A stretch of DNA of 64,000 nt from Mobula hypostoma (taxonomy: Eukaryota): assembly GCF_963921235.1 (NCBI RefSeq), contig NC_086100.1, positions 84,320,001-84,384,000 on the forward strand, given 5' to 3'. Shown here in pieces: positions 18,362 through 43,753 of the stretch (positions are counted from its first letter, which is position 1; every line of letters starts with the position of its first letter). A program made the translations under genes and the position numbers. The notes under the pieces are model-generated. The model was not told where the DNA came from. It saw nothing but the letters and a program-made list of their open reading frames with translations, and did no database searches.

Positions 18362-19399
18362 TTAACATGAGGGTTCTATCTGATGCACATCTTTCACGAA
18401 GATGAAAGATTTGATAGCCTTTGCTAATTCTCTGTATCTTATCGCGTACAGGTAGGGAGCCAGGGCTTTTGGACCCATCATTATTACATTAGACAGGGCC
18501 CAAGTGATGAAAGTTCCCTTTTCGAACTTAATCATGCCACAATAATATAAAATCCTTTCAATTATAATCAGTAGCATTGCACCAAAGTAAAAAACGAAGA
18601 CAAGAGAGTGCATTAGAAAGGTGAGTCTTGCCCTGGAGGTAAACCCTCTCCATATCCTGGAATTCCTCGTCTTCCAGTACAACATGAAGTGACAGCCCAG
18701 CAGTAAGCATACACATGACAGCAACAGGGTAATGAACATCCCATAAAAAAGGTGAGCAAGCACAGCACCGTTTGGAACAATTAGGAAAATATAGTCCAGC
18801 TGACACATTCCCAGCTTGCAAAATGGAGACTGTTGTGTAGCTAACATTAGCACGGTGATGGTAAACTGCGGCAAAGTAACCAAGATCCATATGAAGATCA
18901 CCAGTTTGATCGTCCTGGAGGGAGGGAGCAGTATGATATAATGCAGAGACCAGTTGATAGCTAAGTAGGTGTCTATTACCATGGCTGTGATTGTCATAAT
19001 TCCACCACAACATGAAGACGCTAGAGTGAAAAGCAACAACTCACAAACCACCTTGGCTAAGCTCAGATGGAAAGCGTTACAAAGCTGGACGCAGAAGTTT
19101 ATCACCATGTAAATCAAGTCACTGAGCAAAGTGTTGCTAAGCAGCAGGTATCTGGATTCTTGGCGGAGGCTGCTTTTGGTGAAAATGGTCAGTAAGGTTA
19201 GTGGGCTGGCTAGCAAAGATGCAAAGAAGCAGATTCCTCCTGGGATGATGATAAGCCCGCTTTGACCCCGTAACAAAGCTTCAGCCCATCGTAGGTTAAT
19301 TTCAGCAATGGTACTGGAGGTGAATGTGGAGTTTGGGATCTCTATTGATGACTCATTGGAGTAGAAAATAAAAGTACACTCGGCACCAAGTGAAGCCAT
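18362..19399 (-). CDS. GPR148: GPR148-like orphan 7TM GPCR, copy 1 (345 aa, intronless CDS)
   Basis: Seven hydrophobic segments. Motifs LRQESRYLLLSNTLLSDLIY, TAMVIDTYLAI..LHY, IWRGFTSRARLTFLMHS and MMGPKALAPYLYAIRYREL match GPR148 as I recall it (LRQEPHYLL, HTYLAV, SRARGTLLIHS, YLYLLRYRQL). N-terminal sequons NES and NST. Which copy is the true ortholog is not resolved. Confidence 0.85.
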   Translation of the reverse strand: MASLGAECTFIFYSNESSIEIPNSTFTSSTIAEINLRWAEALLRGQSGLIIIPGGICFFASLLASPLTLLTIFTKSSLRQESRYLLLSNTLLSDLIYMVINFCVQLCNAFHLSLAKVVCELLLFTLASSCCGGIMTITAMVIDTYLAINWSLHYIILLPPSRTIKLVIFIWILVTLPQFTITVLMLATQQSPFCKLGMCQLDYIFLIVPNGAVLAHLFYGMFITLLLSCVCLLLGCHFMLYWKTRNSRIWRGFTSRARLTFLMHSLVFVFYFGAMLLIIIERILYYCGMIKFEKGTFITWALSNVIMMGPKALAPYLYAIRYRELAKAIKSFIFVKDVHQIEPSC

Positions 19400-20619
19400 C
19401 TTGCTGCATTTAGTGAAGATTCACAAATCATTTATCTTTATAATCTTCTGGTAAAAGGGGAAGTGATCTCAAACAGTTAGAATCTCTTCTTTTCCTTCCT
19501 GAATTTTATTCAGTTCCAGTATTCTTCCTAGATAGTTTTAACCCACTGGAAGGAGTTAATTGAGAACCAAATCCTTTAGCAGTCAGAGCAAATCACAGGG
19601 AACACTGCAGCCCCTATCCTCCTATGTGCGTCCAAAATCCAGATCTCTCACTTCCTGAGCACTCGCGCTTTGACCTCTCAATAAAACAGCATGGTCCCCC
19701 ACCTCTACATCAGGGTTAATTAGCTCTGGAACAGCATTCATCTCTGCCTCCCTCTGAGACTTCAGAGCAAATATTAGCTCTTGAAATCAGCCACAACTGA
19801 TTCCCTTCCCTTCAGGTGTGTGGTGGTGAGCAGATGGAACAGTCAAAGTCAAATCACTGGATTACTGCTAATGCAAACATTCCACTTTCCCTAATGGGCT
19901 ACTTAGGGCAGCAGGAGAGGCCTGACAACAACAAGTTATCCGTTCAGATAACAATGATTTATTACCTGTTAGCTTATCTGACCCTTTTTCTGAGAATGAC
20001 TAAAATATCCTTTGTAGCCTTTCTTTCACACCTTCTAGATTTGAGGCAATTGACCGAACGAAGAGAGGAGTTTCATTTACAAATTTAACCCTGACTGCAA
20101 TAGACAACCGAGGTTGAGAGACTACTAATATTATGAGTTAGTTAGCAGCTGTGCAAAGAGAAACAGATTTACATCACTGGCCCACTACTCTTTGGGACTT
20201 TGTTTTTCTTTCCATCGACGTTACCTGACCCACAGAATGTTTCCGGCATTTTCTTTTTTTTTTGTGTCGGATTTCTAGCATCTGCAGTTTTGTTTTGTCC
20301 TAATTTCATCAGTTTAGCTTTCAAGTATTAAATATCTGTACATGACATTCTCCATTTACCGTTTTAGTTGGTGTATTTGCCAGGTCACTGTAGGATCTGT
20401 AGGGTCATGCTCAGGCAAAGAAACAGATCTTGAATTTCCATTCAAAACAGCCCAAGTATTTATCTACCAAAATCAATCAGCTCAATTTTCAATTGACTAA
20501 CATCATAGTCACTGGTGATATGGGCCCAAAATTTCCTTTTGCACATGTTTCTCAGTCAATATAACTTTTCTGTGTGTCAGCCTGAAACACCAGTGTCTCT
20601 TTTTTGGAAATACTAACCT

Positions 20620-21200
20620 TTTTTATATCAAAATAAAAACTATTCATAATAGTATTTATAAGAATAAATGGTGCAATGCCTTTTCATTCTTAGATTGCCA
20701 GTCAATGTTTTAAGTAGTGTTCAATACCAATAGGGTTGTTGCCACTCATATGGCTCCTTGGGGAGGTTCGCCACAGTAACTGAGGTGCTTCCTCACCCAA
20801 CCTGTCCAGTACTGGAAGGACCCTATATTGCGGTCCTTCCCCACTGAGTTCTTGCAATGACTGCACCAAGCTTCTGTGCATCCCTCAGCACGTACCCCTG
20901 CAGCTCAGAATGTGCCAACTGGCAGCGTTCCTCTATGGACCTCTTGACGTGTTGGCAATCCAACAGATTTTGGGCCGACCGAAGGGCGTCTTTCTCTGAG
21001 TTGATGATCTGCCAGCATTACTTGATGGCCATCTGTGTGTCCGTCCCTGGGTACAGCCTGTAGATCAGAGTCCTCTGTCATGTTACCCGTAACACAGGCC
21101 CTCACAGCTTTCTCCGCAGGTGTTGTGTTGGAGCAAGAGCGGCCGCAGGGGATTTTTGGGTCGAGCAGAAGCTCTGCCAGACACCTTACATATGCGGTGT
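20620..21200 (-). mobile_element. Degenerate Tx1/L1-clade LINE 3' fragment
   Basis: The minus strand encodes CQLAHSELQGYVLRDAQKLG, resembling the ORF2 C-terminus of fish/shark Tx1-like elements. A-rich tail near 20620. Confidence 0.55.
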
Positions 21201-21534
21201 TATTGGGCTGGAAACAACCTTACTCTTGTACTTTCAGAAGTAGCATTTCATCAAATAAAGCCAATCTTTCACCCCAGTGGTAAAACTGAGTCTCTGTAGC
21301 ATAGTCTTTATAGATAAGATTGGGTTTAAATTTTAAAAATATCCCACACTGATTTACAATTCAGTGAGGAGCTAGAGAGATTGGACATCAGTGGGATTCT
21401 GCGTTGCCTTGCATCTTCCCTATGTTCATGTTGGGGCCTTAATTACAGCCATAAGTACCTCCCCACCTTTTGGACAGCTGATGTTGGGACCAAAGTAGTT
21501 GCTGACAAGTATTAGCTACATATATTAATAAATA

Positions 21535-22191
21535 GAAGGAGGAGAAGATGGCTGCGCGACGGCAGCGTGTGCGGCCTCTTCGGTGATGAATATCTGTTAC
21601 CTGTCAAGTAGAGTACCGTGCACAATTCTGATTTGATGGAGACAGACGTGAAGGTACAGAGGAACATCTGGAAAACTTCTGAAATGTCCGCTTTGCTGCC
21701 GCTGCTGCTGTGTGGTAACCGGAATCTCCGGAGCAGAAGGCCCCGAATCCTCAGCTTTGCTTGTTTCAGCGGCTGGGGCTAGGTCAAAGGCGCTCGGCAG
21801 AGGATGGGGCTCGGGAGGCTGTATCGGAGGGGTTGGTCGGACGGATAGGCTCAGTGTCGGCTGTGGTCGGCTGCTTCCAAGTCATCGGCAAGTAGACGGT
21901 GCCTGGAGGTTTATGGCAGGGAGTTTCTCCCTTTTGCCGCCTGCTATCGGGGACTCAGGAATCGATCGACTCAGGGACTTTTGAGACCTTATTTACCATG
22001 CCCATGGTTTGTTCTTCATCAAATTATGGTATTGCTTTGCACTGCTGTAACCATATGTTATAATTATGCGGTTCTGTCAGTGTTAGTCTTTGGTTTGTCC
22101 TGTTTTCTCTGATATCACTCCAGAGAAATATTGTATCATTTCTTAATGCATGTATGACAATAAAAGAGGACTGAGTGTTCTCATAATCTAA
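21535..22191 (+). mobile_element. ~650-bp non-autonomous retroposon, copy A
   Basis: Collinear with 61697-62366. Head is GAGGAGAAGATGGC; tail is AATAAAAGAGGACTGAGTGTTCTCATAATCTAA. Confidence 0.8.
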
Positions 22192-22217
22192 ATACTATGG
22201 TGCCTCATGGGTTAAAA

Positions 22218-22514
22218 GGGCAGCACACTAGCGTAGTGGTTAGCTACGTAGTGGTTTACAGTACAACTGGCCCTGGTTCAATTCCCACCACTGCCTGTCG
22301 GGAGTTTGTACATTCTCCCCATGACCGCGTGGGTTTCCTCCGGGTGCTCCAGTTTCCTCCCACAGTCCAAAGATGTATCAGTTGGTTGGTTCATCGGTCT
22401 TTGTAGATTGTCCTGTGATTAGGCTAGGATTAAATCGGGGGGTTACTGGGTGGTGTGGCTTGAAAGGCCAGAAGGGCCTATTCCGTGCTGTATCTCAATA
22501 AATAAATAAATAAA
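22218..22514 (+). mobile_element. tRNA-derived V-SINE (HE1-like) with CR1/HER1-type tail
   Basis: Box A-like TAGCGTAGTGG, box B-like GGTTCAATTCC, V-domain GGGTTTCCTCCGGGTGCTCCAGTTTCCTCCCACAGTCCAAAGA, and tail GGGCCTATTCCGTGCTGTATCTC(AATA)n. Confidence 0.85.
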
Positions 22515-23249
22515 ATGATATTGTTTTAATTCAGCTTTCATCACTCATTTTTGAGGAGCTAGTCAATGCCAAGGCAGAGGAGGGAAGCAGATGTCTTGCT
22601 TGAAGGGTATTAGTGAACCAGATAGATTCTTTTTAATGACAATCGAATAGTCTGTGGTCATTATTACTAACTTTGGTTGTTATTCCAAATCACCACTGGA
22701 TCCAAATTCCACCATTACCATGGCAGAATTTGAACTCAGATGTGGTGACAGAGTCCAGGCCTTCTGTTCCTGGTCCAGTAACTTAAACTCATTGCCGCCG
22801 TCGCTATTCTGAGATTGCGTTGCTACAGTAATTACTTCTGCTTCTGAAGGGGGCACTTTATAAACAAAGTTACCATCGCTTACTAAACTGAGCTTATGGT
22901 CACCTACCTCATCTAGAAACAGTAGTCAGTAAATAACTTGTGGGAGCTTATTCTCTGTCACTAAACTGTATCAACTTACCTGCAATTAAAATTTCCTCTC
23001 AGCGGTAATGTAGACACAACCTGTGTGCAAGCGACTCTTGTACACAAGTTATGCCTACATTAGTCACCTGCAGTTTATGTAACAGAGATAAGCCATCCAC
23101 CCTATCATCTGTGCAGCTGATTCCTCTGTTGATGAGCATCGAAAAAGCTGGATGTTACTTTTCTAGGCTGCATGAATCGTTCTCTTCCTCACAATTTAGC
23201 CTTGTTCAATGTTTTGGTGATAACACCTCACCTCTCAGGTACCAAGCTT

Positions 23250-23360
23250 GGGCCCGAAACGTCGACGGTTTGTGCCCTTCCATAGACGCTGCCCCTCTTG
23301 CTCAGTTCCGCCTGCATCTTGAAGGTATAGCTCAAGATTTCTGGCATCTGCCGATTCTCC
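23250..23360 (+). mobile_element. Penelope terminal-repeat remnant
   Basis: GGCCCGAAACGTCGACGG...GATTTCTGGCATCTGC is similar to the end of the Penelope copy at 56490-56600. Confidence 0.6.
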
Positions 23361-23739
23361 AGTGTCACTAATGGAGGACTCTGGCTGGGTTCCAACCTGT
23401 GTTAGTGTAAATCCTTCTACCTTCTCAAGTCAGCTCTCTGAAGTTGATAGTTCATTGGCCTATGAACTCTCTATTTGCAGCTATCAACCAGCTTTCAGTG
23501 ATGCATGTGTGCACGGACCACATGATCTCTTTGCCCTTCAGTCACCTCTCTTACCATTCAGGCCTGGTCTTTTCCTCTCGGGTAAAGTAGGATTACCGCA
23601 ACCCTCCCCAGATTTTCCACAGACTTTCCCAGTCAGTTATTGTATCTGTCTAACTTCTTTCCAACTAGGCTACTTTCAACAAATTTGGAAATACAATCAA
23701 TGTTATTCATAAAAATATTGTGTGTGTGGGGGTAGGGTA

Positions 23740-24077
23740 TAGGATAGATGGTCAGAGATTTTCCTCGGGTGCGGTAGTTTAAAACTAAAGGTCATAGATT
23801 TAATATGAGAGGAGAAGCATTTCAAGGACCTCTGACGACAAGCTTCTCACGTAGACAGCAGTGGTCGTGTGCAACAAGTCACCAAAGGAACTGGTAGAGG
23901 CTGATACAATGATAGCACTCCACTGGCATTTTTGACAGGTACTTGCATGGGAAAGAACTGGAGCAACATGGGCAAATACAGGAAAATGGAATTAGTGTGG
24001 ATAGGCATTGTGGTTCGCACAGATGAATTGGGTCAAAGGGCCTATTTCCCCACAATGTAACTTTATGATTCTATGAA
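23740..24077 (+). mobile_element. CR1/HER1 LINE 3' fragment
   Basis: Similar to the 3' ends of other CR1 copies in this window; ends in GGGTCAAAGGGCCT...TATGATTCTATGA. Confidence 0.7.
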
Positions 24078-24199
24078 CCTCTCAGATGCACAGAGCCTTC
24101 TGACCGACTACTTGCAGAAACTCCAGTAATTAGTGTATTTTTCAAATAGTTAAACCACGTCAGTTAATTTATAAACTATTGATTATCTATTCACTGCTG

Positions 24200-25790
24200 A
24201 TTATACTTTATACTTTATTGTCGCCAAACAATTGATACTAGAACATACAATCATCACAGCAATACTTGATTCTGTGCTTCCCGCTCACTGGATTACAAAT
24301 ATTAAATATTAAAAATATTAAAATAGTAAAAATTAGTAAATAGAAAATAGAAAAATAGAAAGTGAGGTCGTGCAAAAAAACCGAGAGGCAGGTCGAGATG
24401 TTTTGGAGGGTACGGCCCAGATCCAGGTCAGGATCCGTTCAGTAGTCTTATCACAGCTGGAAAGATGTCACACTGGGGGGGCACTGGGAGCAAGGGTGGA
24501 CCCAAATGCAGGACACATCTTGTGAGGCTACTTAGATTTAGTTTATTGTTTGATACCAGGAGAGCAAGGCAGGAGCAGGAAATAGCGAACTGGACAAGGA
24601 CTCAGGACTACGACTAGGCTGGAACGAGGGGTCTGGGCTTGGACTCAGAATCAGCTCCCAGAACTAGAGGAGACATGAAGAGGCTAGGGTATGGACTCTG
24701 AGCCCGAGACTGGGCAAGGACCCAGTACTTGGGTCTTGCCTCGGGCTCGGACCCCAGAACCAGGCATGGACATGACATGGGCTCGGGAGAGGAGGAACAT
24801 GGGAACACAGAGCCTCGCTCTCGGGGAGCAGGTACATGGAACCATAGACACATACACAGAACAGAGAGCCGGGACCCCTCCTTGGGTACAGAACATAGGG
24901 CCAGGACTCATGACCCTCCGCGGGGCAACGGCAAGATAGCCTGACTTACCCTAAGGAGGCGAGGACAAGACGAGCCAAGACATGACTCTCCGCGGGGCAA
25001 CAGCAAGACGGCCAGACTTACCCCACGGAGGTGAGGACAGGACAAGACCAACACGAACGCACACCAGACAGCACCTATCTAGCTCCGGCGATAGAACTAG
25101 ACCGAAGTGCAGGCAGGGGCTGCAGACGAGGGCTAGAGGTGAGAGGGGCAGAGAAGGGATTCAGACAAGGGGGTAGGACAGGAATCACAGACTGCCAGGG
25201 CCAGGACTTGACTCAGAACTGGGAAGCCGCCAGGGCCAGGACTTGACTTGGTGCTAGAACGCCGCCAGGGCCAGGACTTGACTTGGTGCCTCTGGGTAGT
25301 GGCGAGCTCTCGACTCGGCCCGGGAACAGTAGACAGCAGTTCTTGATTCCCTCCGGCGGATTAACTGACGGACTCATCTCAGTGAGGAAACTTTGCAGGC
25401 TCGCTTTGGTGAGGTAACTGGACAGGGTTGCTCCAGTGAGGAAAAGGCGAATTACCGGCACTCGCTTCAGCAGAGACTAGACTTGCTCCGGCCAGATAAC
25501 ATCGGCACACAGTACCTTAGATGACCTTGCAGACGCTCCTGCACCGAACGGCTGAAAGCCGGAGACTATAAACTATTGGTTCTGCCGAGTGTTAATTGCC
25601 TCTAATCACCAAAGTCGAGGGACACGGGAAAACAGGGAATCAACGGTCCGGATCATAACGTAAACAAGCTAAATTTAAAGGGACCCCGATCCGGACCATG
25701 ACAAAAGAAGCTGTTCCCAAATCTGGCCATATGAGTCTTCAAGCTCCTAAGCCTTCTTCCGGAGGGAAGAGGGATGAAAAGTGTGTTGAC
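24200..25790 (-). mobile_element. Rex1/Babar LINE 3' fragment split by a solo LTR
   Basis: Host sequence CAGCTGGAAAGAAGCTGTTCC is restored when 24466-25708 is removed. It resembles the Rex1 3' region at ~33390-33480. Confidence 0.6.
24466..25703 (-). mobile_element. Solo LTR (1238 bp), Gypsy/BEL-like
   Basis: TGTCA...TGACA termini. 5-bp TSD AAAGA at 24461-24465 and 25704-25708. Minus-strand AATAAA at ~24542. Internal short tandem repeats; no coding domain. Confidence 0.8.
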
Positions 25791-25925
25791 CAGCACTCAT
25801 TTTTCTGAGTGCTCTGTCACTGAGTCCATGGTAAGTTTTTGGTAACTTCCCTGTGATGGGTATTAGAAGGTAAACAAATAAAACTACAGATGAAAGAAAA
25901 AGAAAAATAAATACTGGAAGAACTC

Positions 25926-28149: not shown

Positions 28150-28640
28150 CATCCAGAATATTGCACGGATTGATGATGGACATGCTCTTTATGATCAGAT
28201 TTGGTTTTGGGGAGGGAATTAGGACTTGGATCCAATAACTCAACACGGGCATCAGTAGTGCCATCCAAATTAATGGAGGAGAAACAGAGGGCTTCCCCAT
28301 CATCTGGAGTCAGGCTTGCTGCTCAGTCTCTTGTGCCTTGTCCCTGTATTGTATCAAGCCTTTTACCAAATCCAGCAGAAAGGACATAGGTAATGATGCC
28401 AGGCATTCGGGACATTCAGGACAAGGCCTCAGTGAACATGAGTGACGTCAGTGTCTTCTGCTTGGACCCACAACCTGTCAATGCCTTGCAGATGCATTGT
28501 TAAAGGAGGAAGCAAGACATGCCCTGACACATTGTAAGATAATATATTAAACTGATGCTACAATGAATGCAGAAAGTAATGTTCCAAATGAATTTGCTGT
28601 ATATATTATGAATGAAGTATATTTTTGATATAAAAAGCTG
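28150..28640 (+). mobile_element. Degenerate Tx1/L1-clade RT fragment
   Basis: Encodes FGFGEGIRTWIQ and SGVR, resembling the RT of L1/Tx1 elements. The tail resembles the reverse complement of 20620-20660. Confidence 0.5.
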
Positions 28641-29513
28641 TAATGTTAAACGCATCTCATCATCCATCAATTAAATATTTCCCTCCAGTGTCCTCTGCTT
28701 TTGAAGTGCTTTGAGCTCCTGTATCCAGTTTTCCACACCAGGAAAATGCTGCAGCTTTTGGCGTTAAATGGTCATCTTTTGAGATTGCTTACAGAAGGTG
28801 TTTCTGAAATTACAAAACTGTAATTGAAAATTGATTGTTCAAGTTCATATCCTGTCCATTATGAATATGTCCTAAACCAAATAATGTACATACAGAGGCT
28901 GGTCTGAGAAAACAGAACATATTGTTCACTTGAATTGGTCATGCACAGTGTGTGTGAACTGAAGCGTCAAATCAAATAGTTAGTCAAAGGTAATAATGGA
29001 CAGGGATTCAAAAGCAGTAAGTTGAACTGAGGTTCTGCTGAAATCTCATCTCATTTGAAAGTGAACCCTATTGCAGTACTCACAACATTTCTGTGAGGAT
29101 TGTGCTCAATGTTATTCATATGAAGAAGGTGGTGTTTTGTACTCAGATGGAATGAGACTGAGTGGCACTGCGAAAAATCTGAATCTCTGCTTTTTTCAGC
29201 TTCTACGAACTGACTTTTAAGCACGTTGCTTGGGAAACTAACCGAGAAATGTTTCAAAATTAGGTTGGTGCCTCATGCAGAATGTGCATGGTTTCTGCAA
29301 TTTTCTTTGGAAGTATTTACTTTTTTTGGTGTTCAAGGAACTTACAGGTGTAACTTATATCTGGCAGTTGGCATATCTGCAGAAAATATTCAGACAAAGA
29401 CTTGGCTACAGTCAGAACTTTAAAATAAGTGAAAGACGCTGAAAACCATTGGAATTCTGGATACAAGCAAGCACAAATCTTTGGAACTGTGAACTTACAT
29501 TAATCTGCACAAA

Positions 29514-30569
29514 ATGAATATATCTAAATGTGAAAATTGTGATGCTTCCAATGTGATGTCTCTTCTGGGGGAAGAAGTGGCTACAGTGCAGTACTCCATA
29601 AACGTGTCCCACACTGCAGAACTCCGTGCCTTACGTAACCTGGCCCAGAAATCATTTCTTACTATGTCTCAGCAGGGAATGAATGGTTTGGACATTCTTC
29701 TTGTAATCTGTCTTTTTGCCTCACTGCTGGCCACTCCCCTGGTCCTGATGGCCATCTTTTCAAACAGCAGTCTTCGTCGGGAGACCAGGTACCTTCTGCT
29801 TGCCAACACTATGACGAATGATTTAATCTATTCAATATTGAACACCTTTGTTGCTGTCCTTAATACAGTGAGAGCTGCAATGCCCAAAGTAATTTGTGAA
29901 TTGATCTTGTTCCTGTTAACTGTGGCATATTCAAATGGAATTCTAACAATCACTGCTATGGTGGTGGACACTTATGTGGCCATTGGCTGGCCTCTTCACT
30001 ATCCGCTACTTTTATCCCGTTCTAGAGCAATCAAGATCATTGCTTGCATATGGGTTATCTCTGTCAGCCTTTCTTCTATCTTGCTCATAGTAATGCTGTG
30101 GACACAGGACGATCCATTTTCCTTGTTCACAGTGTGTGTGGCACCCTTGGTGCTTTTGTCTTCTCCATTTGGAACATTTTTGTTAAAATGTTCATTTGGC
30201 ATTGTATTTCTTTATTTTCTAACATGCTTAGTATTAATATCAAGTTTCTATATATTGTTATACTGCAAAACAAAGACATTGGGGATATGGGTGAACAACT
30301 CAAGGGCAAAACAGACCTATCTCATCCATTCAATGCTGTTACTTCTTTATTTCTCTCCTCTGGCTGTGCTGGTAGTCGGGATAGTGATTTATGGAATGCA
30401 CCCAGCTGAGACCCAGGAAGCAATCTGGATCATTGTGTCAGTAAATGATATTCTGATGTTACCAAAGGCCGTGAGCCCCTATGTTTACGGGCTGAGATAT
30501 CGAGAGATTACAAACACAATCCGATCATTCTTCCCTCTGAAGTCAAAAACTCAAGTAAGGCCACTGTGA
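29514..30569 (+). CDS. GPR148-like orphan 7TM GPCR, copy 2 (351 aa, intronless CDS)
   Basis: 7TM. Motifs LRRETRYLLLANT..NDLIY, TAMVVDTYVAIGWPLHY, SRAKQTYLIHS and MLPKAVSPYVYGLRYREI. Paralog of copies 1 and 3. Confidence 0.88.
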   Translation: MNISKCENCDASNVMSLLGEEVATVQYSINVSHTAELRALRNLAQKSFLTMSQQGMNGLDILLVICLFASLLATPLVLMAIFSNSSLRRETRYLLLANTMTNDLIYSILNTFVAVLNTVRAAMPKVICELILFLLTVAYSNGILTITAMVVDTYVAIGWPLHYPLLLSRSRAIKIIACIWVISVSLSSILLIVMLWTQDDPFSLFTVCVAPLVLLSSPFGTFLLKCSFGIVFLYFLTCLVLISSFYILLYCKTKTLGIWVNNSRAKQTYLIHSMLLLLYFSPLAVLVVGIVIYGMHPAETQEAIWIIVSVNDILMLPKAVSPYVYGLRYREITNTIRSFFPLKSKTQVRPL

Positions 30570-32189
30570 AGCAATTTGAGCAGAAAGGTTTGTAGCTGCG
30601 ATGCACTTGGTTTTCCCTCCTTATGTTACCCTGATCAGGGTTTTGCACAAGTAATACCCACTCTGCATTGTATAATGCACAGTACTTGGACCATGGCAGA
30701 GTCTGTCTGACGGATGCCCTAGAATCTGGAGTAGAGACAGGCTAGTCAGCTCGCCAGGTTTATCATCGTAGCACCCACACCTCAAAACTGTCTAAGTTAT
30801 TATTGTGGAATTAAATCTTCAAATATTTAAAATTAAAAACACAATCGTTACATTGCCCAATCAGTACTTCTGATTTCTGACAGCTTCTCTTTTGAGTTTT
30901 AGTCCCTTTAAGTTAAAGGTCTACGGCAGATAGTTTTGGAAATCAGATTGCGATGGACAGCTATCGCCCACACTGGAGTCCATTCATTGCAACAGGAACA
31001 GCCTGTTGTGAAATATCAGTATCTGAGCAGGGAGGCGCAACTTTCAACATTCACCTGCATGTTTTGGTGGTTGAATCTCTGTAACTAGATGCTGAAGAGA
31101 CTCATTGTGTTGGGGCGCTGCTTGGTGTTTCTGAAGCATTTGCAAAGTTTTGGGTGAGGAACAGCCATTGTTTATTTTTATATGGGATGACATTCACATT
31201 GGGGAAGGTGAGTGTTTTTCAGAGGAGCTTAAACCTTAGATATGCAATGAATGAAAGAGCATTTCCTTTAGGGGCGAAAAGTTAAATCTGTGTCTCCCCG
31301 GTAGAAATAAAGTCTGCATCCCAAATTGCAGCCACCTATCCTGGGGTCTTATAATGGCAGCCAAATTGTCTGTTTGAATCAGGAGACATTATTGTTGAAT
31401 GCAAATCAATACTCCTACTATGTATGTACTAAGTGGACTGTGATCCATTGAAACAGACTCAGTGAAAACCTCTTAGAATCACAGGAGATACTCACTATGG
31501 TAAATGGAGCATACCTCTACAGGAATAAAGTGTACAGCATTAACTCAGGCTCTGTGTCCCCAAGATTATGCTCGCCTAACATGCTTACACTATGGGGAAC
31601 ATGTTTGCAATAGAATGTTATTAAAGCCCAGCCTGCAAAATAGACTTAAAACCAAATGCTGAGAATAAAATCTTGAGCAGCTTAGATAGCATCGGTGGGA
31701 AAAGAAACTACTAATATTTCAAGTCCAGGAGTTTTCATTAAAACTGTTGAATTCACTGTCACTTTCCTCCTGTGATGGCAGTGTTGAAGAAGTTATACTC
31801 TGTTCTCCAGCAGTAGTTCCGATTTCCTGTTTTTTTTAATTTCAGATTTTCAACACTTGGAGCGAGAGTGATTTTCATTTATTGCAAATTCGACTCCTGA
31901 CAAGAAGACAAAAGGGCGGGGCAGGGGGTGGGTGGGTGCGATGCTGGAACAGATTCTTAGCAGGACTGTGCAAGACTATAGCAGATAACCTTCCTGTTAT
32001 CTCTTTGTCTCTCTCTCTCATTGATTTTGTTTGAGAACTTTGTTTTCCTGTCTTGAGATTTTTAGTCCAATTCCATGCTCTTCTTTTGTTTGTGGCTTTG
32101 CTTCCTGTTGTTGGGAGTAAACTCTCTGCAATGCTCATCAAAATGACAACTATATGCTCAGGGAAAGCCCTTCAGCAAGGAATGTGCAG

Positions 32190-33137: not shown

Positions 33138-34355
33138 ATCAGAATCAGAATCAGAATCAGGTTTATTATCACTGCCATGTGTCGCGAAATCTGTTAGCTT
33201 AGCAGCAGCAGTTCAATGTAATATATAATATAGAAGAAGAAAAAGAATAAAATAATAATAATAAATAAGTAAATCCATTACAGTATATGTGTATTGAATA
33301 GATTAAAATCGTACAAAAAAACACAAATAATATATATTAAAATAGTGAGGTAGTGTTCACGAGTTCAATATCTATTTAGGAATTGGATGGCAGAGGGGAA
33401 GAAGCTGTTCTTGAATCACTGAGTGTGTGCCTTCAGGCTTCTGTATCTCCTGCCTGATGGTAACAGTGAGAAAAGGGCATGCCCTGGGTGCTGGGGGTCC
33501 TTAATAATGGATGCTGCCTTTCTGAGACACCGCTCCTTGAAGATGTCCTGGGTACTTTGTAGGCTACTGCCCAAGATGGAGCTGACTAGATTTACAACCT
33601 TCTGCAGCTTCTTTCGGTCCTGCGCAGTAGCGCCCCCCCCCGCCCCATACCAGACAGTGATGCAGAATGCTCTCCACGGTACATCTATAAAAGTTGTTGA
33701 ATGTTTTTGTTACCATACCAAATCTCTTCAAACTCCTAATAAAGTATAGACGCTGTCTTGCCTTCTTTAAAACTGCATTGATATGTTGGGACCAGAGATC
33801 TTGACACCCAGGAACTTGAAACTGCTCACTCTCTCCACCTCTGATCCCTCTATGTGGATTGGTATGTGTTCCTTCGTCTTGCCCTTCCTGAAGTCCACAA
33901 TCAGCTCTTTCATCTTACTGAAGTTGAGTACCAGGTTGTTGCTGCAACACCACTCCACCAGTCGGCATATCTCACTCCTGTACACCCTCTCGTCTCCATC
34001 TGAGATTCTACCAACAATGGTTGTATCATCAGCAAATTTATAGATGGTATTTGAGCTATGCCTAGCCACACAGTCATGGATATAGTGAGAGTATAGCAGT
34101 GGGCTAAGCACACTCCCCTGAGGTGCACCAGTGTTGATCGTCAGCGAGGAGGAGATATTATCATTAATCCACACAGATTGTGGTCTTCCAGTTAGGAAGT
34201 CGAGGATCCAATTGCAGAGGGAGGTACAGAGGCCCAGTTTCTGTAACTTCTCCATCAGGATTGTGGGAATGATGGTATTAAATGCTGAGCTATAGTCGGT
34301 GAACAGCATCCTGACGTAGGTGTTTGTGTTGTCCAGGTGGTCTAAGGCTGCGTGA
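33138..34355 (-). mobile_element. Rex1/Babar-clade LINE, 5'-truncated
   Basis: ORF 33767-34309 encodes [25 protein letters not shown] and [10 protein letters not shown] (Rex1-type RT). (TTCTGA)n 3' tail. Confidence 0.85.
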
Positions 34356-34662
34356 AGGCCGCATTGAACTCATTCTGAGCTATAGACTTTTGACAAGTGG
34401 AGCCCACTGCCTGGATTCCCCACTTGGAATCCCCGTTCCCCCGCATTTACCTGAATCAGATCTGAAAGTTTGAACGTGCAGGCTGAAGGCATCCCGAACA
34501 TGTCCTGTGGTGCCAGAAGTTCATGTCGAGTTCAATTACAGAATGCACTGACAAAGTTTCAGGCTCTGATCTGTCACCAGCTTTGCGATTTCATCTCTGT
34601 ATCCACAGTATATGGAGATCAAAGCACATTGGAGCACTGTGCTTAATTATTTCAATTGCTTT

Positions 34663-35225
34663 AAGAACGTAAGACATAGGAGCAGTGTATGGCCATTTGG
34701 CCCATTGAGTCTGCTCTGCTATCATGGCAGATTTATTATCCCTCTCAACCCCATTCTCCTGCCTTCTCCCCGTAACCTTCGACACCCTAGCAAATCAAGA
34801 ACCTATCAATCTCCCATTTAAATATACCCAAATGACTTGGCCTCCAGAGCCCTCTGTGACAAGGAATTACTCAATTTTATCACCCCCTGTCTTACGAAAT
34901 TCCTCCTCACCTCTGTTCCAAATGGACACCCTTCTATTCTGAGGCTGGTATTGGAGTCCTCCACTATAGAAAACATCCTCTCCACATCCACTCCATCTAG
35001 GCCTTTCAATATTCAATAGGTTTCAATGAGATTCCCCCTCATTCTTCTAAACTCCAGCAAATTCAGGCCCAGAACCATCAGGCACTCCTCATACATTAAC
35101 CCTTTCATTCCTGGAATCATTCTTGTGAACTTCCTCTAGACTCTCTCCAATGCCAGCATAATACTCCATGTGGTCTGACCAATGCCTTATAAGGCTTCAG
35201 CATTATATCCTCGCTGTAATGTTCT
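34663..35225 (-). mobile_element. CR1 LINE 3' fragment
   Basis: Encodes MKGLDGVDVERMF and YKALVRPH; the 3' end matches 49700-49872. Confidence 0.8.
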
Positions 35226-35979
35226 AGTCTTAAACCATGGATACTCATAGATGGTGGATTACACAATCTTACTAAAAAGTAATTGGTGATGAATTCATTT
35301 TCAGTAATTAATAAATAAAAGGCACTAGGCAACACAGGGCATCATGACTGTGTAGTGGTTAGCTAAATTAATGACTGAAATCCATTTAACAACTTAAACT
35401 ACAAAGGATTCAAGTTTTTAATGTTTCTTTACAAAGCTATTAAGTTGCTTTGTAATTCTTTCTTGCTAAATAGTTAATGAAGAATCCAGCTCCTAGTCAT
35501 GTATGAAAATGATTTATTGGTTACAAATAAGTCATCTGTATTCTGATGCAAAAACAAATAAATAATTGAATATAATGAAAATTATTTAGCATCTCAATTG
35601 CAAAGCATTGACAGACACTGTCACACAACTAAATGAGCAGTAAACATTAAACAGGCTATTTGAAGTATCAGCTTGAAAAATCAGCTTTAACGGATACTGA
35701 GCATAACCATCCAGTAATAACCAAAAATGTGGCTATAGTTTGGGTAAACTGATTTAATATCAATTCCTTAAATTACAGACTCAAAGCTTTTAAGAGCCAA
35801 TTCATGAATGTGTGTGTGTGTGTGTCCATGTGTAAGATAGAGAGAGATGCATATATGTAAACAAAACATATGCATCTGTGAGCGAGAGACTAACTGTGTG
35901 AGAGAGAGCTATGTGCAAGCGTCAATGAGAGGATTCCTCTGTCTCTTATATTTTGGTAATGGTTAAAAAAAAATCCAAG

Positions 35980-36380
35980 AGGACCACCACTTGTCGTGGT
36001 TTGGGGGCTTTTGTGCCTCAATGAGCCAGAAAGCTATGTGTTGGCTGGAGTCAGGGCTTTATGTTTTGGCTCTTGGTAGAGTTGCCCATGCCAACAAGGT
36101 CAAAGGGTAGAGGGCAGACTAAAAGTGGTCCACCCATACTCTGGGTTTGGGGTTCAGCTCAGGCTAACAACACTGACAGGTGAAACAAAATCGTTATGGA
36201 AACTATACGAAGAATCCTTCTGCATATGAGTGCAATGGTGTTCCTGAGTCTCCACCAGGGACTTGCATGACAGACAGTAGTAAAAACCGAAAGAAAGCTA
36301 CTGACTCGATGAACACTGCCAGACATGGAGGACTGTCATTGCTGCCCTAAACACCAGCAGCATTACAGGCAGTAAGTAAC
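35980..36380 (+). mobile_element. RTE-type non-autonomous retroposon (probable)
   Basis: GGTCAAAGGGTAGAGGGCAGAC...GGCTAACAAC head and GCTGCCCTAAAC...(TAAG) tail resemble RTE-derived SINEs. Recognised from memory only. Confidence 0.45.
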
Positions 36381-36394
36381 GGGAAAGAAAAGGC

Positions 36395-37085
36395 AATCAC
36401 CTAAACGAGTGAAGTGTGGAAGGACCTTAGCGTTCTAGTGCATGAATCACAAAAACTTCGCTGGCAGGTCCAACAAATAGCTAAGAAGGCATTTTGGCCT
36501 TTATTGCCAATGGACTGGAGTTTACGAACAGGGAGGTTTTGTTACCGTTGAATATGGTGTTGGTAAGCCTGCACCTGGAATACTATGCACATCTCTGGCC
36601 CTCTTAAATAAAAAAGGACATAGTAACATTGGAGGCATTTTTCAAAGGAGATTCACCAGGCTAATTCCCGGAATGAAAAGGTGTTCATATCATGAGACAG
36701 TTTCAGCCTTTATTCCTGGGAGTTTAAGAAATGATGATGATCTTATTGAAGCACACATGATTCTAAGCAGGCTAGACAGGTAGATGTTGGGTTGATTTCA
36801 CGAGTGGGACAGATACAAACAAGATATCATACTGACAAAATAAGGGAATGGTCATATAAAATTGAGGTGCATAAAAATTTCATCTTTTAGGGAAAAGTGA
36901 ATTTTTGGAATCATCTACCACAGACAATGCCATGTCATAAAATATTTGAAATATCATGCAACTGAGGGTCAAGGGATAATAGAGGAATTGAGGCCAGCAT
37001 AATCAGCCATGGTAATATTGAATGATGGGGCAGGGGTTGAAGAGTCGTGTGGCTTACTACTGCACCTATTTTCCTGTGTCTTTCT
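36395..37085 (+). mobile_element. Old CR1 3' fragment
   Basis: Degenerate similarity to 49190-49870 (GGACCTTAGCGTTCTAGTGCA, CACCTGGAATACT, AGATTCACCAGG). Confidence 0.65.
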
Positions 37086-37109
37086 TGTGAATGAGAGAGC
37101 AAGATGTTC

Positions 37110-37124
37110 ATGTGTATGTGTGTA

Positions 37125-37186
<62 letters not shown>
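37110..37186. repeat. (GT)n(GA)n microsatellite
   Basis: Seen directly. Confidence 0.95.
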
Positions 37187-37187
<1 letters not shown>

Positions 37188-37464
37188 TGCAAGTATAAGT
37201 GGGAGAGAAATCCAAGTGTGAGGGATACATATGTATGAAAGAGGTGTGCATGTATGAAACTGATGTGAATATGTGAAAGACACATGCGACAGCAAGAGAA
37301 ATGTGCATGAATTAGTGAGAGGGAAAGCTGTGCAAGTGAACGAGGCGAGCACATGTGTGTGAGAGTGTGTTTCAGTTGTGCTATGTTTCGTAACTCCCAA
37401 AATTTAAATTAATAGAAAGCAAAACACGGACCAGGATAATTTGTGTGTTTTAGTTTCGTTTTTA

Positions 37465-37988
37465 CGAGAGGCGATTGATAAGTTTGTGGCCTAAGGTAGA
37501 AGGAGTCAATTTTAGAAAATCTAGCACATTTATTTTTCAATATAGTCCCTTCCTACATATACGCACTTAGTCTAGCGGTCATGGAGCATACGGATTCCTT
37601 CTTTGTTGAAGCTGGTGTCTCGGACCTCCAGAAAGTGGGCCACAGCAGGGGTGATTGATAAGTTTGTGGCCTAAGGTAGAAGGAGATAAGTTATATAGCT
37701 CTTGTTACATGCACGTGCAGTTCAACTCTTTGAGTGATTATGCAGAAAGTTTGAAGTTAATAACTCACCTGCTTCTACCTTAGGCCATGAACTTATCAAT
37801 CATCCCTGCTGTGGGCACTTTCTGGTGGTCCAAGACGCCAACTTCTACAAAGAAGGGAACTGTATGCTCCACGACCGCTGGACTAAGTGTGTAAATGTAG
37901 GAGGGGACTATGTTGAAAAATAAATGTGTTAGGTTTCCTAAAATTGACTGCTTCTACCTTAGGTGACGAACCTATTAATCACCCCTCG
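37465..37988. mobile_element. Palindromic Tc1/mariner MITE inserted in the Gypsy 3' LTR
   Basis: TA TSD at 37463-64 and 37989-90; the other LTR has the empty site. Long inverted arms. The right arm encodes a mariner-like C-terminus (FYKEG..LHDRWTKCVNVGGDYVEK*). Confidence 0.85.
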
Positions 37989-38185
37989 TACTTTAAGCAA
38001 GGCACACATGTATGACATGGTGGTGTGATGATGTATGCTATTCAAACATTTTTACATATAACACACAATGATTTATTTAAATAAACAAAGAATGCTTAAT
38101 CGAACAATACGTTTACAATGTTACTCAAATATTAAATACACAACACTCCTCCCTGCTTAGCTATAAACTCCAACTCAATAGAGAA

Positions 38186-38840
38186 TATAGAACATAAAAC
38201 ATAGAATAGTACAGAACATTACAGGCCCTTTGGCCCACAATATTGTGCTGACCCTCAAACCCTGCCTCCCATATAACCTCCCACCTTAAATTCCTCCATA
38301 TACCTGTCTAGTAGTCTCTTAAACTTACTAGTGTATCTGCCTCCACCACTGACTCAGGCAGTGCATTCCACGCACCAACCACTCTCTGAGTAAAAAACCT
38401 TCCTCTAATATCCCCCTTGAACTTCCTACCCCTTACCTTAAAGCCATGTCCTCTTGTATTGAGCAGTGGTACCCTGGGGAAGAGGTGTTTGCTATCCACT
38501 CTATCTATTCCTCTTATTATCTTGTACACCTCTATCATGTCTCCTCTCATCCTCCTTCTCTCCAAAGAGTAAAGCCCTAGCTCCCTTAATCTCTGATCAG
38601 AATGCATACTCTCTAAACTAGGCAGCATCCTGGTAAATCTCCTCTGTACCCTTTCCAATGCTTCTACATCCTTCCTATAGTGAGGCAACCAGAACTGGAC
38701 ACAGTACTCCAAAGTGTGGCCTAACCAGAGTTTTATAGAGCTGCATAATTACATCGGGACTCTTAAACTCTATCCCTCGACTTATGAAAGCTAACACCCC
38801 ATAAGCTTTCTTAACTACCCTATCTACCTGTGAGGCAACT
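38186..38840 (-). mobile_element. CR1 LINE 3' fragment nested in the Gypsy element
   Basis: ORF 38308-38712 encodes LEYCVQFW...LERVQRRFTRM...TRGH; A-rich microsatellite tail at ~38190-38215. Confidence 0.88.
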
Positions 38841-41800
38841 GAACTATCTACCTGTGAGGCATCTACCTGTGAGAATGCATCTCAACTTATATAAATATCT
38901 ACTGTATTATACAACTCTATAAAGACATCCACAGCATAGTAAATTTTAAATTGCGCCATTCAGGCCTAAAGATTTCAGCTCTGTGGAAGATTTCTTACTC
39001 TTGTGGCATAATGTCTTTCCTGACAAGGGAGGTCACTTTGTTGGGCCGATGAGAGTTGTGGCTGTGAAACAATCTCAGGTTCTGGGGCCTCCTCCGTGGT
39101 GTTTGTAGGAGATGATTATAGAAATGCAGGAAGTGGTTTTGACAGTTCTGGATACCTTTCTTCTGGATGTGTTGCCATCCCAAAGGGTGCATGGCAAGCT
39201 TCACTGGATGATACGGATCATAATGTGTGAGTACAGTGTCTGACATCACCATTTCTTTCACCTTTTCGAAAATCACCTCACACTGCTTTGTCCATTGCCA
39301 TTTCTTCCTGATCTGTAGTAATGAGTTCAAGATGTGGAACACAATAGCCCGGTTTGGCAGGAACCTGTTATAGTGATTGACAAATCCTAAAAAGGACTGC
39401 AACTGTGCCATGTCCTTTGGCATTGGGGGTATCCATCACTGCTTGAATTTTCTCAGCGCACTTGTTTAATCCTTGTGCATCACAATAGGTGATGAGGTGA
39501 TGCTTGGTTTAAAGAATTCACACTTGTTGCATGATGCTCTGAGTGCATAATCTTTTTTACACTGTCTTGAAATTTTGGAGATGTTCCTTGTCATCCTCAC
39601 TAGTAATAACAATGTCATTCAGGTAACACTATGAGCCTGGGCAGCCTTGCAGTACTTGGTCCATTGCTTTCTGCCAGAATACAGGTGCAGATGCTACTCC
39701 AAAAATAAGCTTATTATAGTGACGAAGTCCTTTGTGAGTGTTTATGGTGAGAAAACACCATCTCCATCTGTAGTTAAGCCTCAGCTAGGTCCACTTTGCT
39801 GAAGTGTTTCCCTGCAGAAAGGTTTGCAAAGATAGCCTCTATCCCGGGCAGAGGGTATTGATTTCCTTTCAGTACTGGATTAATGGTGACCTTAAAATCA
39901 CCAGACATCCTGTCAGACCCATTCTTCTTGGCTACTGCCCATGGGCTCGACTCAACTTAGAAAAGAAATCCTTCAGCCTCCATGTGATCCAGCTCACTGG
40001 CTACTTTATTAAGGATTGTATAAGGAACCTGTTGGGCTTCACAAAACTTGGGTGCGACATTTTCATTTAGCACTATTTTACCCTTAATATGTTTGAGTTT
40101 TCCAATGTCATCCCTGAACACTACTGTGACATCATCCAATACCTTTCTTAATTCGCTTCTAGTTGACTCTATTACAGGAAATGAGGCATGTAAGTAGTAC
40201 ATGGATCTCCAATTAAGCTGCAGTTGTGTCAGCCAATTAAGCCCCCACAATACTGGCCCTCCTATTTTGACCACATATAAGCCCAAATTGGCTTGTTGGT
40301 TGTTGTATCTCACTGTTGCAAATGTCATTCCCACAGGAAGTAACTTTTCTCCAGCTCTTAGTTGGACATCTGCAGGCTTCAGTCCAGTATCTTTGAAATG
40401 CCGCTCAAACTCATTTTGTAGAACGACTGTAACAACCAAGCCGGAGTCCAATTCCATCTTAATTAGTTTGTTGTTCACTTCTGGTGTAAGCCATGTTGTT
40501 TGTCTACTGTTAGTTTTCACATTGTAAATCCCATGGCTAATCAATCCTGTGCCATTCACTTCATTGTCAGATTTTACAACATCTGACGCAGATTAGTGCT
40601 TTTTTTAAAGCTGCAATTTGACTTTTTATCCTTTTCTTTTCCCTGTGCAGTTCATTTATTTTTGTCTGCCCAACATGCTTTTTGTATGTTTCTTACTTTG
40701 CTGCATTTTCTGCAAGTTTCGCCTTTAAACCTGCATGAGTCTGCTGTAGGCGAACCCCTGCCACAACAGTAAAATAATCTGTTTGGCCAGGGTGTTTTCT
40801 GTTTAGATATAGCAATTTTGTTCACGCTCACTTTCATTCCTGACTTCAACTCAATTGCATCTCTCTCTGCTGTTTCCTTTGATATAGCTATTTTAACTGC
40901 TCTTTTAAATGTAAGTTGCACTTCAGTTAGGAGGCAGTTTAAATGTTTTGTTGTAAAATTCCACAAACTAAATGATATCTCAGTGCATCGTTAAGCCCAC
41001 TACTGAACTGACAATGCTCACTCGACAACTTCTTCAATTCAGTCATGTAAACTGAAAGGAACTCCCCTTCCTTTTGATTCTGCTTATGAAGCCTAAAGCA
41101 ATTAACAATGGGTTCGTTCTAAATATTCCTGCATTACTTTCACAGTGAAGCTAATTTTGGCTGATTTACTTCTGGTAAAATGGTGGTGCATGCAAACGCA
41201 GTGGCCTCTCAGGAGCCAACCAATGGTGCTTTGTTCTCTGTAAAATTTGTTTTTTACAATCCAAAGACTATTCTACTCCAAGAGCTTCAGGCACTGCAGG
41301 GCTAATCCATCAGTGAGCTGCTCGTTGATGCTCTTTTAAAAAAAATTATCATTATTATCACCCGGTACTCGCTGTTTATGAACTTGTGAATTCTTCCATT
41401 TTCTGCCTTTTTTTTTAAAACTCTAATTTCTCACTGCGCTTCAACAGGTAGGTAGTCACCTCGGGTTCATTTCAAACTTTCTCATCACCATTGTTATCGT
41501 TTGTAACTCCAAAATATTAAACTATTTGAAAACAAAACACGGAGCCAGGATAACTCATGTATGTTACTTCCGCTTTTACTTTAAGCCATATGCGCATGTA
41601 TCACGCAATGACGTATGCCATTCACATATTTTTACATATAACCCATAATTAATTATTTAAATGAACACGAATGCTTAATCAAACAATATATTTACAATAA
41701 TACTCAGATATTAAATACACAAGTTATGCATGTGTGGATGTGTGAGAAAGAGAGATATACATGTATGTGTATGTATGTGATATGTACTAGTGAAGGATAG

Positions 41801-42694
41801 GTGAATAATGTTTTGTGTTCTGGAAACCTTGTCCTCATATTAATTACTTTCCTGTCATGTATGCAAGTTGCATCAGTGTTGAGTTGTGAACATCCTTCCA
41901 GCAAAGTTAATTGTTTTGTCCACTGGTTCCAAATAAATTTACCTTACACTACTGTGTTATCTGAGCTTGTTTCTCTCTAAGATTACTTGCAGTTAGATGA
42001 CTCTTAGACTGTACCACTGACTAGTTAGTTCCTAAATTAGCCTCTAACCTCTGTCCTTAAAAAAGCTAGAAATTGTACCTCATTACATTTGTAAATCAAC
42101 TAATTAACAGAAGAATAAATTAAATAAAGAAATCTTCTTCAAAACAGGAGGTAGAACCATTTTTGAACAACCCACATCCTGGATAGATTCACCCATTTTG
42201 TGCCATTTATCCACAATAAGACAGTAATGAAACATGGTTTTTCCAGTTTGGATGATTACTAGTACTTTTAAGGATAGAGGCTAGAAACTGATTTGTGGCT
42301 TAAATTGTTATTTGGACATTCTATGAGTGTTATTTAATTGCAAATAATCCAAGAGGAAAACTATCTCAAATACCAACACTGTGTAAAGTGCATTCATTTG
42401 GAATCAGAGTGCAAATAAAACAGGTAACATTGCTGGAAAGAAGTTCATAAATCATCTCTGGAGCTAAGTTTTGTGCCAGGAAATTAAAGACATTAGTGTG
42501 TGGCACACAAAAGCTATATGGAATCATTATTCATTCATGAATTACTAAGAGGTTCATCACTTTAGTTCAGCCAACAATAATGAAGTAGGGATCCTAAATG
42601 CAAGCCATTGGCAGTTTTCCTATGGTTGAAAGTTTTGTTTGAATGAATCAAGTATCAGTAGATTTGTTTGAATGAATCAAGTATCCTGATGGTG

Positions 42695-43753
42695 CTAATC
42701 AGTGGGGTTTATACGCCTAATATGTCTCAGCAATGGTAAAGTTTGGATTGACTTAGTCACCTCTCGGTACCGCAGTGCATAAACATATGGGGAAACTGCT
42801 CTAGGTAACATCATAAGGAAATTTGTCATTGACCTATTGATCCAGAGTACTGTCACATAGGAAATCAGGTCCATTTCTTGGAGTGCACCCCCTGCCACTA
42901 GACCAAGCAAGGGAATGAAGTAAAAGAATAGCAGCATTGACTGAATAAAGTAAGTCTGCCTTGCCCTGGAGTTGCCAGTCCATATTCCTGACGTCTTAGT
43001 TTTGCAGTATAACATGACATAGCTACTGGAAATCAGTACTAAACATATTAGAAAGTAAATTACTGTAAAACTGTAATACATTTTTAAGATAGGTAATCGA
43101 AGGAAAGAAAACATGAATATTAAAGGTAAAATACAAATCGATAACGTGGACAATGGATTCTGTTGAGTTCCTAGTGTTATTATAAAAATGACAGATGGAG
43201 CTGCGGCAGAAACAATACAAATACAGATAATGATTTTCAGGGCCCTGGATCGAGGTAAAAGTGAGGGATAACGAAGCGGCCAGCTAACAGCCACATAAGT
43301 GTCCACCACCATTGCAGTGACTGTCAGAATGCCATTACAATAAGACACGGTTAACACATACAATAGTGTTTGGCAAACAACTTTAGGCATCCCGACACCT
43401 GCAGCATTAAGGATGTCGATGAAGGTGTTCAGTACTGAATAAATTAGATCATTAACCAAAGTGTTGGCAAGCAGCAGGTACCTGGTTTCCTGATGAAGGT
43501 TGTTGTTTGAAAAGATGGCAATCAAGACAAGAGGTACAGCCAACAATGAGGCAATAAGGCAAATTATCAGAGGAATCATCAAAATATGTGTTTTGGAGTG
43601 TCCCAAAGCATTCACCCATGCTTGGATGTCTTCGTGCTGAAGAAAATCCATGGAATGGGACGCATTTGCAGGGAACTGCACAGTAACGTGTTCTTCAGCT
43701 AGAAGAGACATCTCATTGTGGTCGGCACGATGATTGCAATTATATAAATTCAT
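42695..43753 (-). CDS. GPR148-like orphan 7TM GPCR, copy 3 (352 aa, intronless CDS)
   Basis: 7TM. Motifs LHQETRYLLLANTLVNDLIY, TAMVVDTYVAVSWPLRY, KTSGIW..NSRARQT and MMLPRAVSPYVYALRYREV. Closest to copy 2. Confidence 0.88.
   Translation of the reverse strand: MNLYNCNHRADHNEMSLLAEEHVTVQFPANASHSMDFLQHEDIQAWVNALGHSKTHILMIPLIICLIASLLAVPLVLIAIFSNNNLHQETRYLLLANTLVNDLIYSVLNTFIDILNAAGVGMPKVVCQTLLYVLTVSYCNGILTVTAMVVDTYVAVSWPLRYPSLLPRSRALKIIICICIVSAAAPSVIFIITLGTQQNPLSTLSICILPLIFMFSFLRLPILKMYYSFTVIYFLICLVLISSSYVMLYCKTKTSGIWTGNSRARQTYFIQSMLLFFYFIPLLGLVAGGALQEMDLISYVTVLWINRSMTNFLMMLPRAVSPYVYALRYREVTKSIQTLPLLRHIRRINPTD

Follow-up and report, generated by a model that had tools for sequence, protein, structure and literature searches.

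We analysed a 64,000-nucleotide stretch of the Mobula hypostoma genome (NCBI RefSeq assembly GCF_963921235.1, contig NC_086100.1, positions 84,320,001 to 84,384,000 of the forward strand), here called the window, which carries three receptor genes that we labelled c1, c2 and c3 in coordinate order. Each is a single-exon gene for a class A G protein-coupled receptor (GPCR), recognised by an uninterrupted ATG-to-stop open reading frame (ORF) and a match to the Pfam family 7tm_1: c1 encodes 345 amino acids (aa) on the minus strand (18362..19399), c2 351 aa on the plus strand (29514..30569) and c3 352 aa on the minus strand (42695..43753). c1 and c2 are arranged head-to-head, and the trio spans 25.4 kb. 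We found that the three genes form a real, ancient and selectively maintained cluster, already catalogued as or7, or8 and or9. They are most probably the batoid version of an ancient chondrichthyan trio of odorant receptor (OR)-like genes, which belongs to the theta family, is sister to true GPR148 and would have a receptor role outside olfaction.

The three genes had been noticed in a first-pass annotation as intact ORFs of 345–352 aa in −,+,− orientation, and the ORF listing reproduced these coordinates, lengths and orientations. Scores against 7tm_1 were 46.6 bits for c1, 60.6 for c2 and 49.2 for c3 (curated cutoff 30.5), and the Pfam scan at E ≤ 0.01 returned nothing beyond this family, with the OR model 7tm_4 below threshold. 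The copies were rightly described as paralogous yet diverged: c2 and c3 are 51% identical, c1 shares 37% of its residues with c2 and 40% with c3, and c1 is the most divergent member. Searches with c1–c3 and their shark paralogues (tblastn) detected no fourth copy and no pseudogene within the 64 kb, the sequence of which contains no N. The database model of c2 (P0001) is 337 aa long and starts at Met15 of the 351-aa ORF. Because the N-terminal MNISKCEN extension (29514-29555), which includes an N-glycosylation site, is kept in skate, Narcine and shark orthologues, the real c2 product is probably the 351-aa ORF.

Orthologues, synteny and selection in cartilaginous fishes

Database searches recovered three non-overlapping sets of elasmobranch proteins, one per copy, all automatically named 'probable GPR148'. 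Orthologues of c1 were 79% identical in Leucoraja and 67–71% identical in Heptranchias, Heterodontus, Narcine, Pristiophorus, Scyliorhinus, Carcharodon and Rhincodon. For c2, the closest group member was P0002, encoded on an SRR089296 contig; identities were 80% for a Logan protein, 76% in Narcine, 72% in Pristiophorus and 65–69% in Heterodontus, Cetorhinus and Mustelus, and the Leucoraja orthologue lies at L003:17500-18555. Orthologues of c3 were 92% identical in Hypanus sabinus, 87% in Pristis, ~81% in three skates and 71–76% in sharks. Intact ORFs of the trio genes were found in more than ten species.

The same genes have been described in catshark. Syed et al. 2023 (PMC10116579, SI table 2) placed OR8 (68,707,856), OR7 (68,731,770), OR9 (68,748,465) and OR6 (68,782,340) within 75 kb of LR744042.1 and reported 6–13 'or' genes and hardly any pseudogenes across 11 chondrichthyans. 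Sharma et al. 2019 (PMC6368271) had already seen OR7 and OR8 as duplicates of a single elephant-shark gene, and reported that OR3–7 had been regarded as non-ORs. We translated the first 20 codons of each catshark gene in the published sequence file (PMC10116579) and compared them with database proteins. The OR9 start was identical to that of P0127, the Scyliorhinus canicula orthologue of c1, and the OR6 start to that of P0140, a gene of the GPR148 clade described below; the OR8 start matched the S. torazame orthologue of c3 (P0010-like) and the OR7 start matched the Mustelus orthologue of c2 (P0007-like). These matches identify c1 as the orthologue of catshark OR9, c2 of OR7 and c3 of OR8.

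Catshark or9, or7 and or8 have 345, 351 and 353 codons, matching the window genes, and form one cluster (LR744042.1, 68.71–68.75 Mb) with the gene order seen in the window and in skate. The window proteins differ from their shark orthologues at the residue level (65–76% aa identity), and catshark has a fourth gene, OR6, 33 kb beyond OR9, where the window has an 18-kb satellite. Neither a fourth copy or pseudogene nor an OR6/GPR148 orthologue was found in the window or in the 10 kb past skate c1; given the 33-kb spacing in catshark, this is not proof of loss. The view of the trio as a small uncharacterised receptor family was mistaken, as the catshark orthologues have been named, counted in 11 chondrichthyan genomes and examined by in situ hybridization (ISH) and RNA-seq. 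One-to-one orthology of each copy to a described gene, which the first-pass annotation had listed as an outcome that would count against its reading, was found within cartilaginous fishes and not across all vertebrates.

Conservation extended to the locus as a whole. On Leucoraja erinacea CM054020.1, a rhomboid-family gene (minus), the c3 orthologue (plus), a 351-aa seven-transmembrane (7TM) c2 orthologue (minus) and the c1 orthologue (plus) lie within 21.6 kb, in the mirror image of the window order. Skate loci were colinear with the window in blastn comparisons over the whole interval, including several intergenic blocks, and into the rhomboid gene at ~51.8–61.6 kb. Flanks alignable to little skate amounted to ~0.1–0.9 kb per side per gene. 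The conserved c1 segment (18247..19905, minus strand) comprises the gene with ~115 bp of 3′ and ~500 bp of 5′ flank and was 79.5% identical to little skate (L001:9537-11149); that of c2 (28608..31474, plus) has ~900 bp of flank on each side, probable untranslated-region or promoter sequence, and was 72.6% identical (L003:16519-19427); and that of c3 (42412..44346, minus) was 76.6% identical (L003:9366-11319). The c3 region also had a word share of 0.14–0.61 in DNA sequencing runs of seven other organisms (B–H). In Heterodontus, the c1 and c2 orthologues are head-to-head and 7 kb apart. Three non-coding blocks (22596-23168, 35366-35914 and 49525-49858) aligned colinearly with the little-skate locus at 68–69% identity, and are candidate regulatory elements of the receptor genes.

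Selection on each copy was assessed by the Nei-Gojobori method in a single comparison with the little skate (Leucoraja) orthologue, and yielded dN/dS values of 0.216 for c1 (dS 0.47), 0.259 for c2 (dS 0.43) and 0.238 for c3 (dS 0.45), which indicate that all three coding sequences are under purifying selection, clear but of moderate strength. A ratio near 1, which had been proposed beforehand as the result that would speak against constraint, was found for none of them. In DNA contigs from four related organisms, the c3 coding sequence carried substitutions only, with indels confined to the flanks; there were at least 25 substitutions, and those listed include 11 synonymous and 14 non-synonymous changes, a tally that is not a dN/dS estimate. 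Among the paralogues, dS was 1.0–2.8, and the duplications are therefore old. A recent lineage-specific expansion was ruled out by these values together with the deep orthologues of every copy. The proposal of an old expansion kept by purifying selection is thus borne out by the elasmobranch orthologue sets, by dN/dS of 0.22–0.26 and by conserved synteny.

Relationship of the trio to GPR148

Placement of the trio was assessed with two maximum-likelihood (ML) trees under LG+C20, built from 60 and 53 sequences. In both, a theta/GPR148 group made up of two clades, A and B, was separated from OR outgroups and from the 'x5' genes with support of 100/100. Clade A (98/93 and 99/96) contained mammalian GPR148, caecilian, coelacanth, gar and bichir genes and teleost genes of ~313–344 aa, and also took in a separate shark gene (OR6/P0140, P0135) and a 352-aa gene of elephant shark (Callorhinchus). 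Clade B (96/92 and 89/89) contained Xenopus, one bird, teleost genes of 358–373 aa and the c1, c2 and c3 groups. The ML trees supported the c1 group at 100/100, the c2 group at 100/99 and the union of c2, c3 and a 350-aa Callorhinchus gene at 99/100, and the gene trees inside each of the c1, c2 and c3 groups largely follow the species tree. With few gains or losses, stable orthologues and no other OR-like gene in the 64 kb, the trio behaves as expected of theta-group genes.

These trees place c1–c3 as paralogues of GPR148, in its tandem sister clade B, and identify catshark OR6 and the elephant-shark 352-aa gene as the true orthologue of GPR148 (theta1). Niimura 2009 (PMC2817399) equated GPR148 with group theta1, in agreement with the grouping assumed in the first-pass annotation, and described theta2 as its sister group. 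Clade B is probably Niimura's theta2, given its sister position to theta1 and its occurrence in fish, frog and bird. The label 'GPR148-like' is correct as to family membership, on the best database and structural matches, and wrong if taken to mean duplicates of GPR148.

That the trio might instead be chondrichthyan co-orthologues of GPR148, produced by local expansion of a single theta1 gene, is suggested by the database names, all of which read 'probable GPR148', by human GPR148 as the best structural match and by the D-T-Y signature common to both. We consider it extremely unlikely, since sharks and elephant shark own a separate gene within the GPR148 clade (OR6/P0140, P0135 and Callorhinchus-352), c1–c3 instead cluster with genes of frog and bird and with the long genes of teleosts, pike has both clades side by side, and elephant shark has one gene of each between rhomboid and KLHL genes. 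Human GPR148 shares with the trio its family, the DTY and xPYxY motifs, orphan status and a single-exon coding sequence, but it is a paralogue in a separate clade and only 25% identical to c1 in structural alignment. Given that c1–c3 are paralogues and not the GPR148 orthologue, expression and function of the human gene should not be transferred to them.

Comparison with bony-vertebrate members of clade B (frog, bird and teleost genes of ~350–373 aa, automatically named GPR148) showed the same KLHL-side locus, and the C-x4-C pair of their second extracellular loop (ECL2) is kept in c1 and lost in c2 and c3. They differ from the trio in copy number, with one gene in each bony vertebrate examined as opposed to three in elasmobranchs, and the teleost genes are longer and have a very long stem (branch length 1.1–1.2). 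Two further elasmobranch proteins, P0153 and P0199 (321 aa, from Heptranchias and Heterodontus), lie on the same chromosomes and are also automatically named 'probable GPR148'; they have a DKY motif, are placed next to a Callorhinchus OR and not in the theta clade, and are mis-named.

Gene order in distant lineages points to a common origin of the two clades at one locus. In elephant shark (L008, MU249842.1), a rhomboid gene is followed by the 350-aa clade B gene, the 352-aa clade A gene, which shares 50% identity with catshark OR6, and KLHL. The pike locus (Esox, L006, CM021595.1) runs from mTERF through a 334-aa clade A gene, 81% identical to its salmonid counterpart, and a 366-aa clade B gene to KLHL. 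Herring has mTERF, clade A and KLHL, and swift has clade B and KLHL. In the fish loci, the clade A gene adjoins KLHL or mTERF. In Callorhinchus and Esox, the clade A and B genes are direct neighbours beside a BTB-BACK-Kelch gene of 601–610 aa, and the two clades are therefore an ancient tandem pair. The ancestral jawed-vertebrate locus reads as rhomboid, clade B, clade A (GPR148), KLHL.

Receptor motifs, expression and proposed function

All three proteins are class A (rhodopsin-like) GPCRs by their 7tm_1 matches and seven-helix architecture. An AlphaFold2 model of c1 (pLDDT 80.8, pTM 0.80) has seven long helices and helix 8. Against the AlphaFold Swiss-Prot models, its best structural match was human GPR148, followed by odorant receptors, while matches in the PDB were all class A GPCRs, ORs included, and generic. 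By sequence, the solved structures included no close relative, the nearest being aminergic receptors at E ~1e-11. The cysteines linking the third transmembrane helix (TM3) and ECL2 (C119 and C199 in c1 numbering) and Asp2.50 (D94) were invariant in a 40-sequence family alignment. The class A E/DRY motif is replaced by D-T-Y throughout the theta family, from mammals to sharks, and NPxxY by S/A-P-Y-x-Y in c1–c3 and by x-P-Y-x-Y family-wide. As read from the alignment, DTY and xPYxY are a trait of the family and not a defect of the window copies. With Arg3.50 absent, coupling may be atypical.

Expression has been described for the catshark orthologues. Products for all catshark or genes were obtained by reverse-transcription PCR from olfactory organ RNA, and ISH in olfactory epithelium was negative for all or genes of the Sharma et al. 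2019 set, which included or7 and or8 and not OR9, named only in 2023 (PMC10116579). Mayeur et al. 2024 (PMC11979771) reported or9 as low but stomach-specific and or6 and or8 as weak and unspecific, with or7 absent from the gene model; their RNA-seq data gave no olfactory enrichment for or8 or or9.

These observations bear on whether c1–c3 are working odorant receptors of the ray nose, which is very unlikely. The genes do belong to the type 2 radiation of OR-related genes (Niimura 2009, PMC2817399), the catshark PCR products came from olfactory organ RNA, and ORs are the next-best structural matches. With canonical ORs (7tm_4) they share the class A fold, an N-terminal NxS/T glycosylation site and single-exon genes, and the OR signature MAYDRYVAIC-PL-Y is resembled by V-D-T-Y-V-A-I-x-W-P-L-x-Y of the window genes. 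However, the window proteins have no 7tm_4 match at E ≤ 0.01 and no DRY arginine, and they are stable one-to-one orthologues without the birth-and-death dynamics of true ORs. Catshark or genes were not expressed in olfactory sensory neurons (OSNs) (or7 and or8 in the ISH set; PMC10116579), and RNA-seq gave no olfactory enrichment. Sharks are moreover reported to be without ciliated OSNs. Of the chemosensory or endogenous-ligand roles proposed in the first-pass annotation, an olfactory one is contradicted for catshark by the negative ISH.

We favour a reading in which an ancestral clade B gene was duplicated to three in cartilaginous fishes, c1 probably splitting first and c2 and c3 later, and all three copies have been kept by purifying selection since at least the shark–ray split. 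The proteins would be 7TM receptors gated by a ligand and used in cells other than olfactory neurons, with the paralogues dividing expression between them, as the low, stomach-specific or9 and the weak, broad or8 of catshark suggest, and the ligand may be endogenous or diet-derived. More tentatively, and with considerable doubt, the threefold expansion of clade B, specific to cartilaginous fishes, might reflect subfunctionalisation, in which an ancient chemosensor outside olfaction gave rise to tissue-specific sensors (a gastric c1/or9 being one example) that signal without the DRY arginine.

Several results weigh against the favoured reading. Support was 81/0 for the branching of bony clade B, c1 and c2+c3 relative to one another. 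In approximately unbiased (AU) tests, neither a single clade of c1 and bony clade B (p = 0.40) nor a position of Callorhinchus outside elasmobranch c2+c3, which concerns the c2/c3 split relative to chimaeras (p = 0.066), was rejected. The theta2 label is drawn solely from sister position and taxon spread. A sequencing-run search with c1 (among RNA runs) and c3 (among runs of any kind) listed no RNA run containing either gene, and small, possibly RNA runs of the species had a word share of ~0. The functional argument is borrowed from one shark, whose gene model lacks or7, and without Arg3.50 the proteins may not signal through G proteins at all.

The last points lead to the possibility that c1–c3 are functionless intact relics or atypical, non-signalling 7TM proteins of a decoy or scavenger-like kind, which we regard as unlikely. 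It would fit the replacement of Arg3.50 of DRY and Asn7.49 of NPxxY, the lack of listed RNA runs with c1 or c3, the weak or8 expression in catshark (PMC11979771) and the behaviour of human GPR148, which is retained in the endoplasmic reticulum and has no constitutive G-protein coupling in human embryonic kidney (HEK) cells (bioRxiv 10.1101/2021.02.16.431425). Yet the relic version is excluded by dN/dS of 0.22–0.26 at dS ~0.45 in all copies and by intact ORFs in more than ten species. Against the decoy version, the DTY motif is invariant across the family from mammals to sharks, which indicates a conserved and used motif rather than loss of function.

Surrounding sequence and implications of the locus

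Beyond c3, the window contains the 5′ part of a rhomboid-family gene (51803..61655, plus strand), detected as colinear blastn and tblastx blocks and used as a synteny anchor outside the receptor family. It marks the edge of the cluster in skate, stingray and elephant shark: a called Rhomboid (PF01694) gene adjoins the c3 orthologue in Hypanus and Leucoraja and the 350-aa clade B gene in Callorhinchus. This neighbour may be PARL, as its exon at 59613-59852 resembles the N-terminal part of that protein; a protein database search with the exon gave no match.

Much of the remaining sequence is repetitive, and the picture of intact receptors amid decayed transposons was accurate, with remnants of RVT_1, RT_RNaseH_2 and long interspersed nuclear element (LINE) endonuclease and reverse transcriptase between and around the genes. 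Reverse-transcriptase and RT_RNaseH_2 fragments of decayed retroelements (Pfam RVT_1 and RT_RNaseH_2) lie between c2 and c3 on the minus strand (33767-34309 and 38308-40559), and the block at ~38.3–40.6 kb coincides with most of the extra c2–c3 spacing relative to little skate. A LINE-like remnant on the plus strand (47146-49009), located between c3 and the rhomboid gene, consists of a 342-aa Exo_endo_phos ORF followed by a 191-aa RVT_1 ORF. Inside a rhomboid-gene intron, an ORF with a weak RVT_1 match is followed by a GIY-YIG ORF (54838-56176, plus strand), a domain pair typical of Penelope-like elements. The other end of the window (1-17867) is a huge satellite made up of ~539 tandem copies of a 32-bp unit (ATTGTGGACAGGATGTGTGGAATGGAGTTTGG), with 78% matches and a GC skew of ~+0.7. 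It yields spurious minus-strand repeat ORFs of 300–650 aa and adjoins c1, at the place taken in catshark by the OR9–OR6 spacer.

What this analysis adds is the correction of orthology, from GPR148 to its sister clade, and the reconstruction of the locus. Automatic annotation names five different elasmobranch genes 'probable GPR148', and the practical value of the result is mainly corrective. The scheme of rhomboid, clade B, clade A and KLHL offers a naming framework across vertebrates and connects the 'OR-like' genes of sharks (or6 to or9) with the theta groups of Niimura. An invariant DTY and a very slow turnover of genes make the family an interesting and already recognised target for deorphanisation. 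If the three copies did become tissue-specific sensors by subfunctionalisation, elasmobranchs would be the best system for deorphanising the whole GPR148 family.

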